Of a stretch of DNA of 64,000 nucleotides, positions 56,401 through 63,700 are shown piece after piece. Origin of the DNA: Blastocladiella emersonii ATCC 22665 (Eukaryota > Fungi > Blastocladiomycota). A program made the translations under genes and the position numbers. The notes under the pieces are model-generated. The model had not been told where the DNA came from. It did no database searches and was given only the letters and a program-made list of their open reading frames with translations. The stretch lies in the NCBI GenBank assembly GCA_025594325.1, contig JANHCV010000001.1, forward strand, positions 1,240,001-1,304,000, given 5' to 3'. Position 1 is the stretch's first letter, and each line of letters opens with the position of its first letter.

Positions 56401-57004
56401 CCAGCGCTAGCGCAGCCACGGTGCCCCACCACTCGCGCGCAGCGCACACGTGGTGCAACGCGGCGACAATGACGGTGTCGTGAACAGCGGCGGGCGCTGA
56501 GGTGTCGAGCAGCCGCGCAATCTGGTCGAGCGCGGACCGGAGGCGGGCTGTATCCGGAAACGGGGCGGTCGTCGTCGTCGTCGTGGAGGCAGCCCTCGGT
56601 GGCGCGGCGGCGGATCGAGGTGGGGTTGGTGGCGCCGCAACCGAGGTTGGAGGCAGGTTGCGACACGAAGAGGATGGCGGAAGTGTCGGCAGCGACACGG
56701 CAGCGCGGCGGAGCGGCACGCGAGGGTCGGCCGGGTCGGGATGGCCCCGCGACGCTGTCGCAGCCGCAGCAGGCTCGCCCCACTGGGACCGCTGCCGGCG
56801 CGCGACGGGCGCAGACAGCGCAGCAGCCGGTGCCGTTCCCGGAATGTAGTTGTCGCGTGGTTGCTCCATAGCAGTCTGGCGCAGCGGGAGACGCGATGGC
56901 GGGTGGTGGCGCGCTGACGGAGCAGGAAGAGCCGTGCGGGCCGCGTAGGAATCCGCGACTGGGCGGGCGAGCGGCGGCAGGCGCGGCGTCTCTGCGAGAT
57001 GCAT
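53423..57004 (-). CDS. Large WD40-repeat protein with an N-terminal helical (CTLH-like) region, 1 GC-AG intron (54479-54544)
   Basis: WD-like WHRRVVHQLAGF...LASCSADHSIRIWS, IHSNQPFL, VAPCGTWVAAPG...VLLWR. Long Pro/Ser/Ala linkers. Start may be 57004 or a downstream ATG. Confidence 0.7.
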
Positions 57005-57780
57005 GGTGTTGCGAGCGTTGCGTGGGCCAGGGCCAGGTGGTTGGGAAACAAATTCCGGGCCATCGCGCGGCGGCGTAGTCGGGCGCGGCGCGTCGCGTCC
57101 CGCCGCGTGTCTCTCCGCTGCTGCGCCTCCCACATCCCGCACGCCGGGACGCTTGCTTGCGCAGCGGGAAGGTCATTTTGAGTCGGCGCAACTTGTTCTC
57201 CGCGTCACCCGGGACTCATCCCTGCCGTGTGAAAACGGCCGTTGCGCTGGGTCCCAAACCGGGCGCTCGGCGTGGCGCGTCGCGTTTCACCGCGTCACAT
57301 GTACGCGCCCCGCTTATCATGTGACAGACGCGAGACGCGCGTGTCTCACGCACGCGTCGCAGCCGAGCCGGAGGTCCCGCGTTCCCGTCGATCGTCCTGG
57401 AAGCGAGGAAGCACCGGATCGATCCAATCTCGCGTCCGCGTCGTCGACCTCGGAGAGTCCCGCAACGGGAAAGCGGGCACGGTCACGCCGCAGCGCGATG
57501 CGCGTGTCGCCTGCATAAACTCTCGCCTCACTTGGTGGCCTCATAAGCCCGCGAAACCACTCGCACCGCCCTCATCAAGGCGAATGCTCTCGGATCCATC
57601 GCGGCACGCGGAGTTGCATAAAGCACGCGGATTCTTGCCGACTTGAGCGCGGGCGACGACGCGCGTGATCCGTCGCATGACCCGTACTCTTCTCAGGGGT
57701 ACGGGGTTCTACCGCGGCCGCTTCGGGTCGGCTATAAGCGATGCCGCACAGTCGACTACCCGCCCTCGCCGTACCCGAGG

Positions 57781-57786
57781 TATAAA
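57781..57786 (+). promoter_or_regulatory. TATA box of secreted peptide gene A
   Basis: TATAAA 72 nt upstream of the ATG in GC-rich surroundings. Confidence 0.7.
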
Positions 57787-57852
57787 GTGCGACGGCTCCC
57801 CCGCGGCGAGCTGCTCTCCGTCCATCATCTTGCTGATCAACAAAAACCAACC

Positions 57853-58113
57853 ATGCGCGCCACCTCGATCTTCGCCGTCGTCTTCGCCCTCATCGCTGCC
57901 GTCGCCGTCCAGGCCGCGCCCGCTCCCGCTGGTAACCTTCTCTCCGAACCTTGATCCCCGCCACGCCGACCGCGACCTCATACTTCCTCCCAACGCGTAG
58001 CTGGAGATGTGGTCGCCAACGCCCTGCGCCCGTGCAGCTGCAAGTGGGCCTGCACCAACCCGACCTCGGACCGCTGCATGGACTGCTACGCCAACTGCGG
58101 CATCGCCAACTAA
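57853..58113 (+). CDS. Small secreted 6-Cys peptide A (63 aa; exons 57853-57931, 58001-58113)
   Basis: MRATSIFAVVFALIAAVAVQAAPAPA|AGDVVANALRPCSCKWACTNPTSDRCMDCYANCGIAN*; phase-1 GT-AG intron. Confidence 0.85.
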
Positions 58114-58589
58114 GCGACTTGTTCCCGACCACGTCGGCTGCCGTGCCCGCAACGCGTTCCACCTGCGAGGACAAGTTTTGATTATGATACATCATCCTCC
58201 TTCTTTGAACGCTACATCGATCATGTTCGCCACTGAGAGTGTAAGAGAACCAAGTGTGATCATCACGGTCACGCCCGTGGCGCGACGCGTTTTACACGCT
58301 TCCGCCTGTGAGGCCATCACCCATGCACCCACATCTCCAGCGATGCCGCATGGTCGCTCAAGTCGCGCGCGTACAACGAGAGCGCGTGCCTGCTCAACCC
58401 TGAGGTGCCATATGGGCCACGTGTTACTCGACGCGTCGGCCTGCAGCGTTTCCCGCGCGAGCAACGACGCGCGTGACACATCGCCCGCATGGGCACGATT
58501 CCCGACAACGTCTCCCGACAACGTCGAAGTCGGCAAGTTGGCAGCGACTTCGCGTTGGCGCGGGTCGGGATGGAAACAACCCGCCGGAG

Positions 58590-58596
58590 TATAAAA
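58590..58596 (+). promoter_or_regulatory. TATA box of secreted peptide gene B
   Basis: TATAAAA 80 nt upstream of the ATG. Confidence 0.7.
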
Positions 58597-58669
58597 CGCG
58601 GCGATGCCCCACGTCGAGCGGCGCTCTCACCATCACGCCAAGGATCAAGAACCATAGAAACTATCAACC

Positions 58670-58951
58670 ATGCGCGTCACTCCGCTCTTCGTCATTCTCG
58701 TCGCTCTCGTCGCCACCGTCTCGGTGCTGGCCGTTCCCGCCCCCGCCGGTAATCTCTCGTCCGCCACCCTCCGCCACTGAAGCTCGCTGACACTTTCTAT
58801 CTCACCAGATGTCGACGGTGCCATCGGCGCGGCTGCTCCTGACGCCGGCCTCAACTTCCTTCCGCCCCCGTGCCGCTGCAGTTGGGCTTGCTCGGGTAAC
58901 ACCCCTGATCGGTGCGAGCGCTGCCTTGCGGGCTGTGGCTTTGCCGGGTAA
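58670..58951 (+). CDS. Small secreted 6-Cys peptide B (73 aa; exons 58670-58748, 58809-58951)
   Basis: MRVTPLFVILVALVATVSVLAVPAPA|DVDGAIGAAAPDAGLNFLPPPCRCSWACSGNTPDRCERCLAGCGFAG*; same 79-nt first exon length and intron phase as A. Confidence 0.85.
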
Positions 58952-59528
58952 GGTCGGATACCTCAAGGATATGCGCAGGAGGGCCCGCAGGTCAGAACTG
59001 AAGTAGAGCAATACACGTCCTCACCATGTTCTTGTCACTACCCTCGCGGTCATTTACATGTGAAGCCCGTGTCGCTAGACGAGCGAGATTCTTGAGCTGT
59101 CGACAGGATGCTTCTCCTCGGTTCAGTATCGCAGCGGCGCGCACGAACGAGGCATCTGCCTCGCGCACTTCGTCCGCAAGCTCGTCCTCATCTCTGACAC
59201 GACGCCGTTCCTCCGCAAAGGCGTTTGCACGCGACGACAGAGGTGCACGAGAGTTGACTTTGAGGTACCGCATGGGCCAGAAGTTGAGCACACGCGCGAG
59301 CCCGACGCCGACCACGCGTGCGTGTTGCCTCCGTTACGCGTGATGCGTGCTGCGGCCGCTCAGCCCATGTGGGCTTACAAGTGAATCAGGAAAAGGTCGA
59401 GGTGGCCTTGTGCGGGAGCTGAACGGCTCACAGTGTCCTCGACAGAGACGAGGGGTGAAGGAGCCGCGGTGTTCCGCAAGGCAGTCCGCAAGGTCGACGC
59501 GCTCGCCATCAGCTCATCGATCATCAAC

Positions 59529-59606
59529 AAGGGAGTCACTATCCTCCTCGCTGCTTCCCTCGCAGTCGTTGCCTTCACCATTCAGACTGCGGTTGATCCA
59601 GCGGGG
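59529..59606 (+). pseudogene. Possible decayed leader exon of a fourth peptide paralog
   Basis: atcaac AAG GGA GTC ACT versus gene B atcaacc ATG CGC GTC ACT; translates KGVTILLAASLAVVAFTIQTAVDPAG. No ATG, and no Cys exon found. Confidence 0.35.
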
Positions 59607-59994
59607 ACATCGTTCAAGAGTCCAAAACAACTGCCGCCCAGGCGCGGTCTGCAGTCCCGAGCGACCGTACGAATCCTCCTCGGAAGCCTTCCGCTACGAA
59701 ACGCGTCGTGTTTCAGGACCACTTGAGCGTGTGGCGTATCGACGTCACCACATCGCGGCTCTGCGTGCACACGAGGGATGAACACGTGCTCGGCTTCGAT
59801 CGAGGTGCCACATGGGTTAGACCTTGAGCGCGTGCGTGACGGGCACCGAGCACGGGCGACAGCGACCAAGCACGCACCTCCGCCGTACCTGATGGATGAT
59901 GCAAACTTGCTGTCCATGTGGGCTCGCGCTCGTCGTGTGCCACAGCATGCCAGCGCCCAGAGCCGGGTAGTCCTCGCGAGTCGGCAGCCAGCAG

Positions 59995-60000
59995 TATAAA
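59995..60000 (+). promoter_or_regulatory. TATA box of secreted peptide gene C
   Basis: TATAAA 69 nt upstream of the ATG. Confidence 0.7.
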
Positions 60001-60063
60001 GCGCGGCGGCGCCCCCGCGCTCTCTCACACCTTCTCCTAGATCAGACACAAGAAGCCCTAGAT

Positions 60064-60407
60064 ATGCGCGTCGCTACCCTTCTCACTGCTCTCCTCGCCG
60101 TCGCCGCACTGACTGTCCAGGCTGCCCCCGCTTCCGCCGGTGCGTCGTCGCCGACGCAACCAACCGATACGGCCGCCACCCCCGCTCACCCATTCCGCTT
60201 GTAGCCGTCGATGTGTCGCTCCTGACCCGCTCGAACGACAACCCTTCAATGGAGATCAACGGCGTGCGCCCGCGCTGCAACTGCATGTCGATCTGCGCAA
60301 ACCCTAAGAATGCGAACCGTTGTAAGAGCTGCATGATGGGCTGCGTTCAAAAGTCATGGGTGTTTCGAGCGCGTCCGACTCTCGTTGGCAGGAGCCGAGT
60401 CCCGTAA
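60064..60407 (+). CDS. Small secreted 6-Cys peptide C (92 aa; exons 60064-60139, 60205-60407)
   Basis: MRVATLLTALLAVAALTVQAAPASA|AVDVSLLTRSNDNPSMEINGVRPRCNCMSICANPKNANRCKSCMMGCVQKSW...; phase-1 intron at the same position as in A and B. Confidence 0.82.
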
Positions 60408-60719
60408 TAAAGCGCTTAACTTTCTCTGTTTGACACAAATTGCGAGAAGATTGCTCGGGATGACGCGAGGGACTGACCAGGCGAAGTGTTGAGCTGCGAA
60501 AACGCGTCGCGTTTCACCTCGCGACTCGGGGCATGTGACGTTGCGAGACGCTTCTGCTGCACCGCGACGCGTCGCGCGCTGCGCCCCTGGCCGCCCACTC
60601 CCCACCTTCTCGCCCTCACCCTGTCGCATTCTCGGCGATCGGCACCGTCTAGCCGCGTGCAATGCATCTCTATCCGTCCCAGCAATAAGTCAACGAGCTC
60701 CATTTGCGCCGCCGCTGCC

Positions 60720-63700
60720 ATGACCGACGTCGAGACCCTGCAGCGCGAGAACGAGGCGCTCAAGGCCAAGCTGCGCAAGATCGAGGAGCTGTCCATCGAC
60801 AAGATCAAGGTGGAGCTCGTCAGCCTGCAGTGCATCTGCGGCCGCGACCCGCTCAAGCACGGCCTGCGCTGGATCGACTGGGAGTCCGACTACACGTTTG
60901 AGAATGGCGCTAAGTGTCCCGCCTGGCGCCAGGAGCTGGGCGAGCTCGGCTACCTCGTCGTGAAGCCCGTCGACGCCGAGCCGTTCCTCATCACCGCCAC
61001 TGCCACCGGCTACTTTGTCAACAAGGGCTACCGCATCGGCCAGGACGGCGCCTCCGAAATCAACTACGAGCGCAACGGCGACGTCTACCCGACGCTCCTC
61101 GCCCTCATCCAGTCCAAGAGCCAGCACTTTAGCTCGTTCATCGCGCGCTCGCTCCGCGAGGAAATGATCGCCCTCAACGCCGCGTCCACGGCTACCGCAG
61201 CGGCCTCGGTCGGTGCGCCCAAGCAGTCTCCCTCGAAGCCGAACTCGGCCGCCAAGGACGGCGCCGCCGCGGCTGCGGCCGAGTGCGACGCGAGCATGAA
61301 CAGCAACGCCGGGTACGCCGACGACGACGACAAGGTGGACCAGCTCGAGGCCAAGCGCAACGCGTACCTCAAGAAGTACGACCTCGCATGCGGTCGCTCG
61401 CTGTGCATCCCCGCTGACGCTTGCCCACTTTGTAGGAAGGACGAGCGCAAACCCGTCGCGTCGGGCAAGCCCATCGAGCCGTCCAACAAGTGGAAGTACG
61501 TTTTTGTCCCTCAAGCTCGCGATGCGACTTAAATTCACGCCACGAAACAGGCAAATCACGCCCGACAAAGGCGCCGACGCGGGCCACCACCGCAAGCGCG
61601 AGCCATCGCCGATCCGCCGAGTACGTTCTTACGCCCCACACCTCGGCCGCGTCGAAACTAACCATCGCACGTAGAACGCACGGTCCTCGCACTCGCCGCG
61701 TACCAACCTGCGCTCGCGGCACAAAGTCCTCGAGGAGTCGGGCGACGAGTCGGCGGATTCGTCCGAGGAGGAGATGCAGGACAAGCGCCAGGATTGTACG
61801 TACACGCGCAGACTACGGCGCGCTCAGTGCTCACCGTCATCGCCGTGTAGCCGAGGTCCCGCCCGAGCAGTGGCAGATCCAGAAGCTCGTCAAGTACCTC
61901 AAGGCCGGCAACCAGACCGCGACCATCATCGCCATCTGCTCGCTACGCGACTACGACCTCCTAAACGGTATGGCCGCGGTCCACACTCCACTCGCTTCGC
62001 TCCGACTCACCACCGATTGATACAGAGAACAACCAGCTCGCCATCCGCAACGTCGGCGGCCTCGAGATTCTTGTCAACCTGCTCGACACGGACGACCCGA
62101 AGTGCAAGATCGGCTCGCTCTCGATCCTCAACCAGATCTCCAACAACTGTACGTTCTCCACCCGCCGCGTCCAGCTCCGATCCCGCTCACATCTACGCTC
62201 GTTAGTCGTGATCCGCAAGACCATCTCGGAGCTCGACGGGATGCGCCCGCTCGTCGACCTGCTGCACGACGACCACGTCGACGTCAAGTGCCTCGCGGCC
62301 GAGACCATCGCCAACTGCGCCAAGTACGCCAAGAACCGCCGCATGGTGCGCAAGTACGGCGGGATCCGCAGCCTGGTGCGCCTGCTGCACCCGGACCCGG
62401 CCAACCCGGACACGGAGCGCATCGCCATCAGCGGCGCCCTCGCGCTCTGGACGTGCAGCAAGTCGCAGAAGAACAAGGAGGCGATCCGCATGGCCGGATC
62501 GATCCCGCTCCTCGCCGAACTGCTCAAGAGCCCCAACGAGAAGCTCCTGATCCCCGTCGTCGGGATTCTGCAGGAGTGCGCGTCCGACGGTACGCGCGTG
62601 CTGCTCGCGACTGGCGAATCCAGTCTCTGACTCTCTCCCTCGCGCGCGCAACGTAGACCAGTACCGCGCGGCGATCCGGTCGAGCGGGATGATCAAGTTC
62701 CTGGTCGAGAACCTGAGCTCCAAGAACGAGAAGCTGCAGGCACACTGCGCGTCGGCCATCTTCAAGTGCGCCGAGGACGCCGAGACGCGGATCCTAGTCC
62801 GCGACTTCAACGGCATCAACCCGCTGGTCGCGCTCCTCGACAGCATCGGGAACAAGGAGCTGTTGGCCGCGGCCACGGGCGCCATCTGGAAGACGGCCCA
62901 GGACATGGCCAACGTCAACGCCTTCAACCGCCTCAACACCATCAAGAAGCTCGTCTCGCTCATCGAGAACCAGCCCGAGGACGTGCTCGTCAACGTCGTC
63001 GGCGCGCTCGCCGCCTGCGCCAAGGCGCCCGAGGGCCGCCAGGCGATCCGCGAGTGCGGTGGCATCACGCCGCTCGTCGGCCTGCTCAAGGGCACGAACC
63101 AGGGCCTGCTCGTCAACGTGACCACGGCCATAGGCGCGTCCGCGCTCGACGGTACGCGCTGAAATGTTTTTCTGCCGTACGTGAGACGCGACTAACGCCA
63201 GCACATCGTGTAGCTGAGAGCATGGGCATCATCGACCGCCTTGACGGCGTCCGGCTGCTGTGGTCGCTGCTCAAGTCGCCCAACCCGGCGGTCCAGGCGT
63301 CGGCCGCTTGGGCCATCTCGCCGTGCATCGAGAACGGTACGCTCGCATTGTCGTATGACGCGTCTCTCCCCTCATATCTAACCCACCTCGCCGCACCATA
63401 GCCAAGGACGCGGGCGAGATGGTCCGCTCGTTCGTCGGCGGACTGGAGCTGATCGTGTCGCTGCTCAAGTCGGACCACGTCGAGGTGCTTGCGTCCGTGT
63501 GCGCGGCGATCGCGCAGATCTCAAAGGACGAGGAAAACCTGGCCGTGATCACGGACCACGGCGTGGTCCCGATGCTGGCCAAGCTGACGCAGACGCGGCA
63601 CGACCGCCTGCGCAAGCACCTGAGCGAGGCCATTGCGCGGTGCTGCCACTGGGGGAACAACCGGATCGCGTTCGGCGCGGCCGGCGCCGTCGCGCCGCTC

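Follow-up and report, generated by a model that had tools for sequence, protein, structure and literature searches.

Within a 64-kb, 66% G+C stretch of the genome of the Blastocladiomycete Blastocladiella emersonii ATCC 22665 (hereafter the window, meaning the whole of the DNA analysed), three tandem paralogous two-exon genes lie on one strand (+, positions 57780-60407), with a decayed fourth unit lying after the second gene and before the third. We read this array as a birth-and-death family, specific to its lineage, of secreted mini-peptides stapled by disulfides, whose most likely role would be extracellular defence or competition, and we give this reading a probability of roughly 0.6. The array fills the 3.7-kb gap between an upstream WD40 gene (end near 57004) and the adjoining downstream gene, and its three live genes comprise the following features, with lengths in nucleotides (nt).

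57780..57787, + strand: TATA box of gene 1, GTATAAAG, 72 nt 5' of the ATG
57853..57931, + strand: gene 1 exon 1, putative signal peptide MRATSIFAVVFALIAAVAVQA followed by APAPA, then the first base of a split codon
57932..58000, + strand: gene 1 intron, 69 nt, GTAACC..GTAG, phase 1; the GenBank model uses the same junction
58001..58113, + strand: gene 1 exon 2, spacer, six-cysteine core CSCKWACTNPTSDRCMDCYANC, tail GIAN and stop
58589..58596, + strand: TATA box of gene 2, GTATAAAA, 80 nt 5' of the ATG
58670..58748, + strand: gene 2 exon 1, putative signal peptide MRVTPLFVILVALVATVSVLA followed by VPAPA
58749..58808, + strand: gene 2 intron, 60 nt, GTAATC..CCAG, phase 1, with the branch-like motif GCTGAC
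58809..58951, + strand: gene 2 exon 2, acidic spacer, core CRCSWACSGNTPDRCERCLAGC, tail GFAG and stop
59994..60001, + strand: TATA box of gene 3, GTATAAAG, 69 nt 5' of the ATG
60064..60139, + strand: gene 3 exon 1, putative signal peptide MRVATLLTALLAVAALTVQA followed by APASA
60140..60204, + strand: gene 3 intron, 65 nt, GTGCGT..GTAG, phase 1
60205..60407, + strand: gene 3 exon 2, spacer, core CNCMSICANPKNANRCKSCMMGC and a 20-residue basic tail

An earlier interpretation of the window (the sequence-only reading) had proposed three same-strand intron-split genes, each with a TATA box 69-80 nt upstream and a phase-1 intron after the leader, and none of them intact in the open reading frame (ORF) track. 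Assembly of the exons reproduced all three genes, TATAAA was measured 72, 80 and 69 nt 5' of the respective ATGs, and the mechanical ORF list holds only pieces of each gene. All three introns are GT..AG and phase 1 and occupy an equivalent site, splitting the codon just after the leader, with CTSAY-like branch motifs ~18-20 nt 5' of the intron AG. The exons of genes 1, 2 and 3 (exon 1, 79/79/76 nt; exon 2, 113/143/203 nt) differ in length by multiples of 3 throughout and yield precursors of 63, 73 and 92 amino acids (aa), respectively; G+C content at third codon positions is 0.72-0.89, compared to 0.57-0.68 for the introns as a whole. The string GTATAAAR is found at three sites in the window, one for each gene and all in the same orientation as the genes, where 0.13 would be expected. 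Where genes 1 and 2 have their stop codon TAA, gene 3 has an aligned AAA (window 60344-60410), and the absence of this stop position accounts for its 20-residue basic tail, which runs to a double stop, TAATAA, overlapping an AATAAA; the tail could be a neofunctionalised cationic extension or a first step of decay. The earlier description of the family as apparently unnamed holds in that no named family matches it, but gene 1 has a prior GenBank entry, a "hypothetical protein" of identical splice model: KAI9189034.1 is identical to spliced gene 1, from the N-terminus encoded by exon 1 across the splice junction. No competing gene is evident, five long alternative ORFs on both strands of 57003-60049 having produced no Pfam match at E<=1.

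The predicted leaders start with MRA or MRV, continue with a hydrophobic core of 18 residues (Kyte-Doolittle mean 2.0-2.6) and end in V-Q/L-A followed by A/V-P-A-P/S-A, of which V-Q/L-A and the ensuing A/V-P fit the -3/-1 rule for signal peptidase when the candidate cleavage site is read by eye. Each second exon encodes one copy of the core motif C-x-C-x3-C-x7/8-C-x2-C-x3-C, 22-23 residues long, in which the residues that are invariant besides the six cysteines are an Asn and Pro just before Cys1 and an Arg before Cys4. Translation of the exons agrees with what had been described from the letters, namely an MR(A/V) hydrophobic leader ending in A/V-P-A-(P/S)-A, a six-cysteine motif in all three cores with R before Cys4, and fixed cysteines with diverged residues between them: the six cysteines are invariant, and other residues mostly differ between copies that are 31-50% identical. 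The secreted parts would be 42 aa with a net charge of 0 (gene 1), 52 aa with a net charge of -2 (gene 2) and 72 aa with a net charge of +8 (gene 3), and none of the three precursors contains a dibasic processing site or an N-glycosylation sequon.

AlphaFold2 models of the gene 1 and gene 3 mature regions, built from a three-row alignment, are predominantly helical in the C-terminal half of the core. The gene 1 model (mean predicted local distance difference test score, pLDDT, 65.8; core blocks 74-80) has one helix at residues 23-32 that carries Cys4-Cys6, and the gene 3 model (mean pLDDT 63.7; core blocks 78-82) has a short helix (10-13) between Cys2 and Cys3, a long helix (16-37) from before Cys4 to past Cys6, and a disordered basic tail. 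Since Cys4, Cys5 and Cys6 are spaced i, i+3, i+7, they would line one face of a helix, along which the N-terminal CxCx3C segment could pack antiparallel. The simplest geometry for such packing would be a C1-C6/C2-C5/C3-C4 disulfide ladder, with C1-C5/C2-C6/C3-C4, a reversed "cysteine-stabilised" pairing, as the alternative.

Each gene has a TATA promoter of its own; exon 1 encodes a predicted N-terminal signal peptide of the classical type and is followed by the phase-1 intron, and exon 2 encodes a variable spacer and the 22-23-residue core with its six invariant cysteines. The leader would direct the peptide into the endoplasmic reticulum, where signal peptidase would cleave after V-Q/L-A and the six cysteines would form three disulfides that staple the N-terminal CxCx3C onto one face of the C-terminal Cx2Cx3C helix. 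The product would be a compact, stable mini-peptide of 42-72 aa, or less if the spacer is removed, released outside the cell. The array turns over by duplication and decay, and one dead copy is left.

Constraint on the live copies argues that the genes are real, and on this evidence we regard them as very probably so. The array's four repeat units can be aligned with one another. Leader exons are 67-73% identical between live copies (73% at the nucleotide level for gene 2 versus gene 1), compared to 36-45% for the introns and 44-49% for the 280 nt upstream, the latter two values being close to the background expected of a forced alignment of G+C-rich DNA. The overall ratio of non-synonymous to synonymous substitution rates (dN/dS) is 0.41, 0.58 and 0.40 for the three pairs (Nei-Gojobori) with synonymous rates (dS) that span 0.75-1.4; one pair has reached saturation of dS within the core, where the proportion of synonymous differences (pS) is 0.5-0.8. 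All six cysteine codons (TGY) are nevertheless kept in every live copy (18/18). Because core pS is 0.5-0.8, retention of all six by drift in two independent comparisons appears very improbable (odds of ~1e-6 by our own rough estimate). The pattern points to selection of the purifying kind on leader and cysteines alike, with divergence of the residues that lie between the latter.

The decayed unit serves as an internal control and shows the form that decay takes at this locus when constraint is absent. At its TATA position it reads GAGACGAGG, its ATG has become AAG, its GT donor GGGGAC, its cysteine codons are lost, and it falls short of a live unit by ~270 bp. A deletion of 3 nt in its leader is also present in gene 3, and the decayed unit for that reason probably arose from the gene 3 lineage; its presence fits birth-and-death turnover of the array. 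The upstream element is kept even in this ghost, a 15-nt E-box-like sequence (GAGGTRCCRYATGGG) found 262-268 nt 5' of the ATG in genes 2 and 3 and in a degenerate version upstream of gene 1. The GAGGTRCCRYATGGG pattern has three forward and no reverse matches in the whole 32.6-Mb genome, every one in the array, and may be a shared regulatory site or merely the best-kept part of the duplicated unit.

58402..58416, + strand: conserved upstream element GAGGTGCCATATGGG, 268 nt 5' of the gene 2 ATG
59245..59790, + strand: decayed fourth unit, retaining the upstream element and a leader-like stretch at ~59521-59606
59262-59276, + strand: conserved upstream element of the decayed unit, in the same relative place as in the live units
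59802..59816, + strand: conserved upstream element GAGGTGCCACATGGG, 262 nt 5' of the gene 3 ATG

Searches for relatives were consistent with the earlier suggestion of a lineage-specific family without a named relative, none of those of Pfam, PDB, protein, fold and own-genome data giving a relative. The three mature regions matched no Pfam family at E<=10, a defensin or metallothionein class included, and no PDB sequence at E<=10, and a word-indexed protein search with the gene 2 mature region gave no candidate. When 1.84 billion representative proteins were searched exhaustively with an HMMER profile, the sole match was gene 1's own product, KAI9189034.1; the profile, of 46 positions from three sequences, is blind to relatives sharing the cysteines alone. 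Among JGI metagenome contigs, 310 pattern matches were found and none was confirmed. At the level of structure, Foldseek found no fold match in PDB, the VIA wide fold search gave only generic helices (Z<=3.2), a shape search of the ESM Atlas returned only unrelated proteins (template modelling score, TM, <=0.51), and a feature search of the same atlas reached at best 0.78 for the whole precursor and nothing for the mature part. In the B. emersonii genome itself, the family profile, two single proteins and leader DNA matched only the array locus, the leader DNA search being of such low sensitivity that even the 73% identical gene 2 leader was missed. Cysteine-codon patterns gave own-genome matches that were at control level or swamped by CTG/TTG repeats, and three in-frame look-alikes were rejected as having neither the CxC nor the last cysteine. 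The absence of the family from other Blastocladiomycota (Catenaria, Allomyces, Paraphysoderma) applies to predicted proteins only.

Among known peptides, the closest functional analogy is with the alpha-hairpinins, plant helix-loop-helix defence peptides with the motif C1X3C2XnC3X3C4 (Xn = X(4-20), X being non-cysteine), for which a 6C variant, CX3CX3C-X(4-20)-CX3CX3C, is recognised within the class, as are additional cysteines at a distance of 1-3 residues from the main ones (PMC11591084). Like these, the array peptides are short and secreted by prediction, have cysteines as their sole conserved residues by and large, and contain two CX3C pairs (Cys2-Cys3 and Cys5-Cys6) with a loop between them and two extra cysteines; their C-terminal half is predicted to be helical, and the gene 3 model has a short first helix before the long one, whereas the gene 1 model has a single core helix (mean pLDDT 64-66). 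In contrast to the alpha-hairpinins, however, the loop between the CX3C pairs contains Cys4, so that the strict 4C motif failed, and the 6C motif failed as well, with outer spacings of 1 and 2 in place of 3 and 3. A simple antiparallel hairpin would also preclude canonical pairing together with a C1-C4 bond in the array peptides. The array comes from a fungus rather than a plant, its precursors are single-module with their own signal exon and neither vicilin-derived nor multimodular as those of alpha-hairpinins are, and there is no sequence similarity between the two. Because the 4C and 6C motifs failed, the source is fungal, the precursor type differs and sequence similarity is absent, we take the array peptides to be an analogue of the alpha-hairpinins and not a member of that class.

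The CS-alpha/beta defensins of fungi, plants and invertebrates, for example plectasin and copsin, have the pattern C..CxxxC..C..CxC, with a CxxxC helix before a CxC strand. They likewise combine six cysteines, CxC and CxxxC in one small secreted peptide encoded by a signal exon and a mature exon, but the order is reversed in the much shorter array peptides (CxC first, CxxxC last), the models are without a beta strand, and there is no Pfam or PDB sequence match; membership was rejected on the reversed order of elements and the lack of a predicted strand. The PcF / Ole e 6 type of six-cysteine helical hairpin includes PcF, a toxin family of plant-pathogenic Phytophthora (oomycetes), which the array products would resemble as secreted peptides of ~40-50 aa with three disulfides, mostly helical by prediction and from a zoosporic microbe. 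The cysteine spacing differs, B. emersonii is a saprotrophic fungus, and the PcF phytotoxin family was rejected on the absence of any Pfam family at E<=10 for the three mature regions. A Kex2-processed repeat or alpha-factor-like precursor was rejected too, there being one core per precursor and no dibasic (KR/RR) site.

As a kind of gene, the array fits the tandem, diversifying small secreted cysteine-rich proteins of fungi, and would be an ordinary orphan family among them; such orphan families are common in fungi. The likeness extends to the predicted signal peptide, small size and even number of cysteines, and, for arrays of this sort, to tandem duplication, fast divergence, pseudogene relics and a lack of homologues beyond the lineage. 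The precursors (63/73/92 aa, six cysteines each) fall within the size limits of the class (under 300 aa, with four or more cysteines and no further domain), which is a descriptive class and not a homologous family, with most examples known from pathogens and symbionts (Dikarya, Glomeromycotina) rather than from a free-living Blastocladiomycete. What the array appears to add is a new cysteine framework in a well-known kind of gene, and no revision of current understanding is forced by it.

Because other diversifying disulfide-stapled helical peptides act in this way, we rank extracellular defence or competition (antimicrobial or anti-grazer) first among the possible roles, by analogy and, as a claim about function taken singly, at somewhat less than even odds; the cationic gene 3 product (+8) would be its best fit. 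Among the roles that the sequence-only reading had offered (antimicrobial, toxin, effector, signalling), "effector" seems least apt, since B. emersonii is a free-living saprotroph. Only tentatively do we propose the fuller claim that the family is a new three-disulfide framework, expressed and secreted only in the Blastocladiella lineage and bioactive either as a new type of antimicrobial or anti-grazer agent of an early-diverging fungus or as a zoospore-sporulation cue.

Several points weigh against the defence-peptide interpretation of the array. The neutral to acidic character of products 1 and 2 is unusual among membrane-active antimicrobial peptides; the signal-peptide cleavage site is a by-eye reading; the AlphaFold models are of only modest confidence (mean pLDDT 64-66) and provide no disulfide map; and gene 3, lacking the stop position of genes 1 and 2, may be in early decay. 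The B. emersonii genome paper describes a 21-contig assembly annotated by funannotate using ab initio predictors only (PMC9730499), and because the public annotation used such predictors alone, the splice match with KAI9189034.1 is an independent computational prediction and not transcript evidence. Finally, the products of genes 2 and 3 were not found in the profile search of representative proteins, and as no such product is among the proteins searched, both genes were seemingly missed by the annotators' pipeline and appear to be missing from the public protein set.

The near-neutral, non-cationic products 1 and 2 would sit more comfortably with the second-ranked interpretation, which we consider unlikely: that the peptides are signals of the fungus's own life cycle, acting, for instance, as autocrine or paracrine cues to sporulate, release zoospores, encyst or sense density, and not as weapons. 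The conserved upstream element specific to the array suggests shared, possibly stage-specific regulation, and the B. emersonii life cycle is tightly staged (PMC9730499). However, signalling peptides usually keep their receptor-contact residues, whereas the array copies differ almost everywhere but at the cysteines, and neither a receptor nor a processing site is evident, dibasic sites being absent from the three precursors.

That the copies are non-functional, being unexpressed or decaying relics of a duplicated segment with the GenBank entry for gene 1 an ab initio over-prediction, strikes us as improbable. One unit is certainly dead, gene 3 reads beyond the stop position of its neighbours, the public annotation is ab initio only, and the family occupies a single locus with no relatives in the proteins, metagenome contigs or own genome searched, all of which speak for a relic. 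Yet at a dS near saturation the three live copies have kept their ATG, TATA box, GT..AG junctions, intron phase, open frames and 18/18 cysteine codons, which the ghost lost; GTATAAAR occurs nowhere else in the 64 kb, and dN/dS is below 1.

Secreted metallothionein-like metal binders, or structural peptides of the wall or cyst coat cross-linked via their cysteines, are very improbable: CxC and CxxC spacings are known in metal-binding peptides and the array peptides are small with no other recognisable features, but no metallothionein family was matched in Pfam even at E<=10, a signal peptide would lead into the secretory pathway, an oxidising environment in which six cysteines are normally paired in disulfides, and cysteines make up only 6 of the 42-72 secreted residues. 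Metallothionein was rejected as a family assignment on the signal-peptide-like leader, this low cysteine content and the absence of a Pfam match.

If expressed and active, the peptides of the array would extend the catalogue of disulfide-stapled mini-proteins by one new cysteine framework and would be among the first candidate secreted bioactive peptides from the Blastocladiomycota, a lineage under development as a cell-biology model whose extracellular chemistry is, to our knowledge, almost unknown. The apparent omission of gene 2, gene 3 and the decayed unit from the public set suggests that ab initio annotation of the B. emersonii genome misses small intron-split genes for secreted peptides.

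Motifs of the ACGCGTCGCGTTT type, near-palindromic and with ACGCGT as an MluI-box-like core, are repeated in the spacers of the array (window 57084-57103, 57271-57290, 58276-58295, 59699-59715, 60500-60516 and 60563-60576), several of them 90-165 nt 3' of a unit's coding end. The ACGCGTCGCGTTT-type pattern has five matches in the window against 0.47 expected, and the motifs might act as a hairpin at the 3' end or terminator, or else as a site for a transcription factor. The adjoining downstream gene (window 60720-61530) has a CLU-N/GSKIP-like N-terminal domain at its start, and no functional link of the array to this neighbour or to the WD40 gene is evident.

Two further observations concern other loci of the B. 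emersonii genome. A minus-strand leader-like start, MRAFVSAFVLALLVVLGAAAHGA..., has its ATG at position 1117 of its locus (L028, G000:C1:4139600-4142600); a stop after the MRAFVSAFVLALLVVLGAAAHGA leader suggests an intron following the signal peptide, and the sequence is unrelated to the six-cysteine family. The cysteine-codon pattern also met identical 52-57-nt strings at distant sites, some inverted, 6-38 kb apart.

G000:C1:2601709-2601765, - strand, and 2630712-2630768, + strand: identical strings
C3:91559, + strand, and 97276, - strand: identical strings
C3:642978, + strand, and 680705, - strand: identical strings
C3:316279, C5:1031183 and C5:1185757: further sites

These strings point to dispersed or inverted repeats in the B. 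emersonii genome, possibly transposons or segmental duplications.

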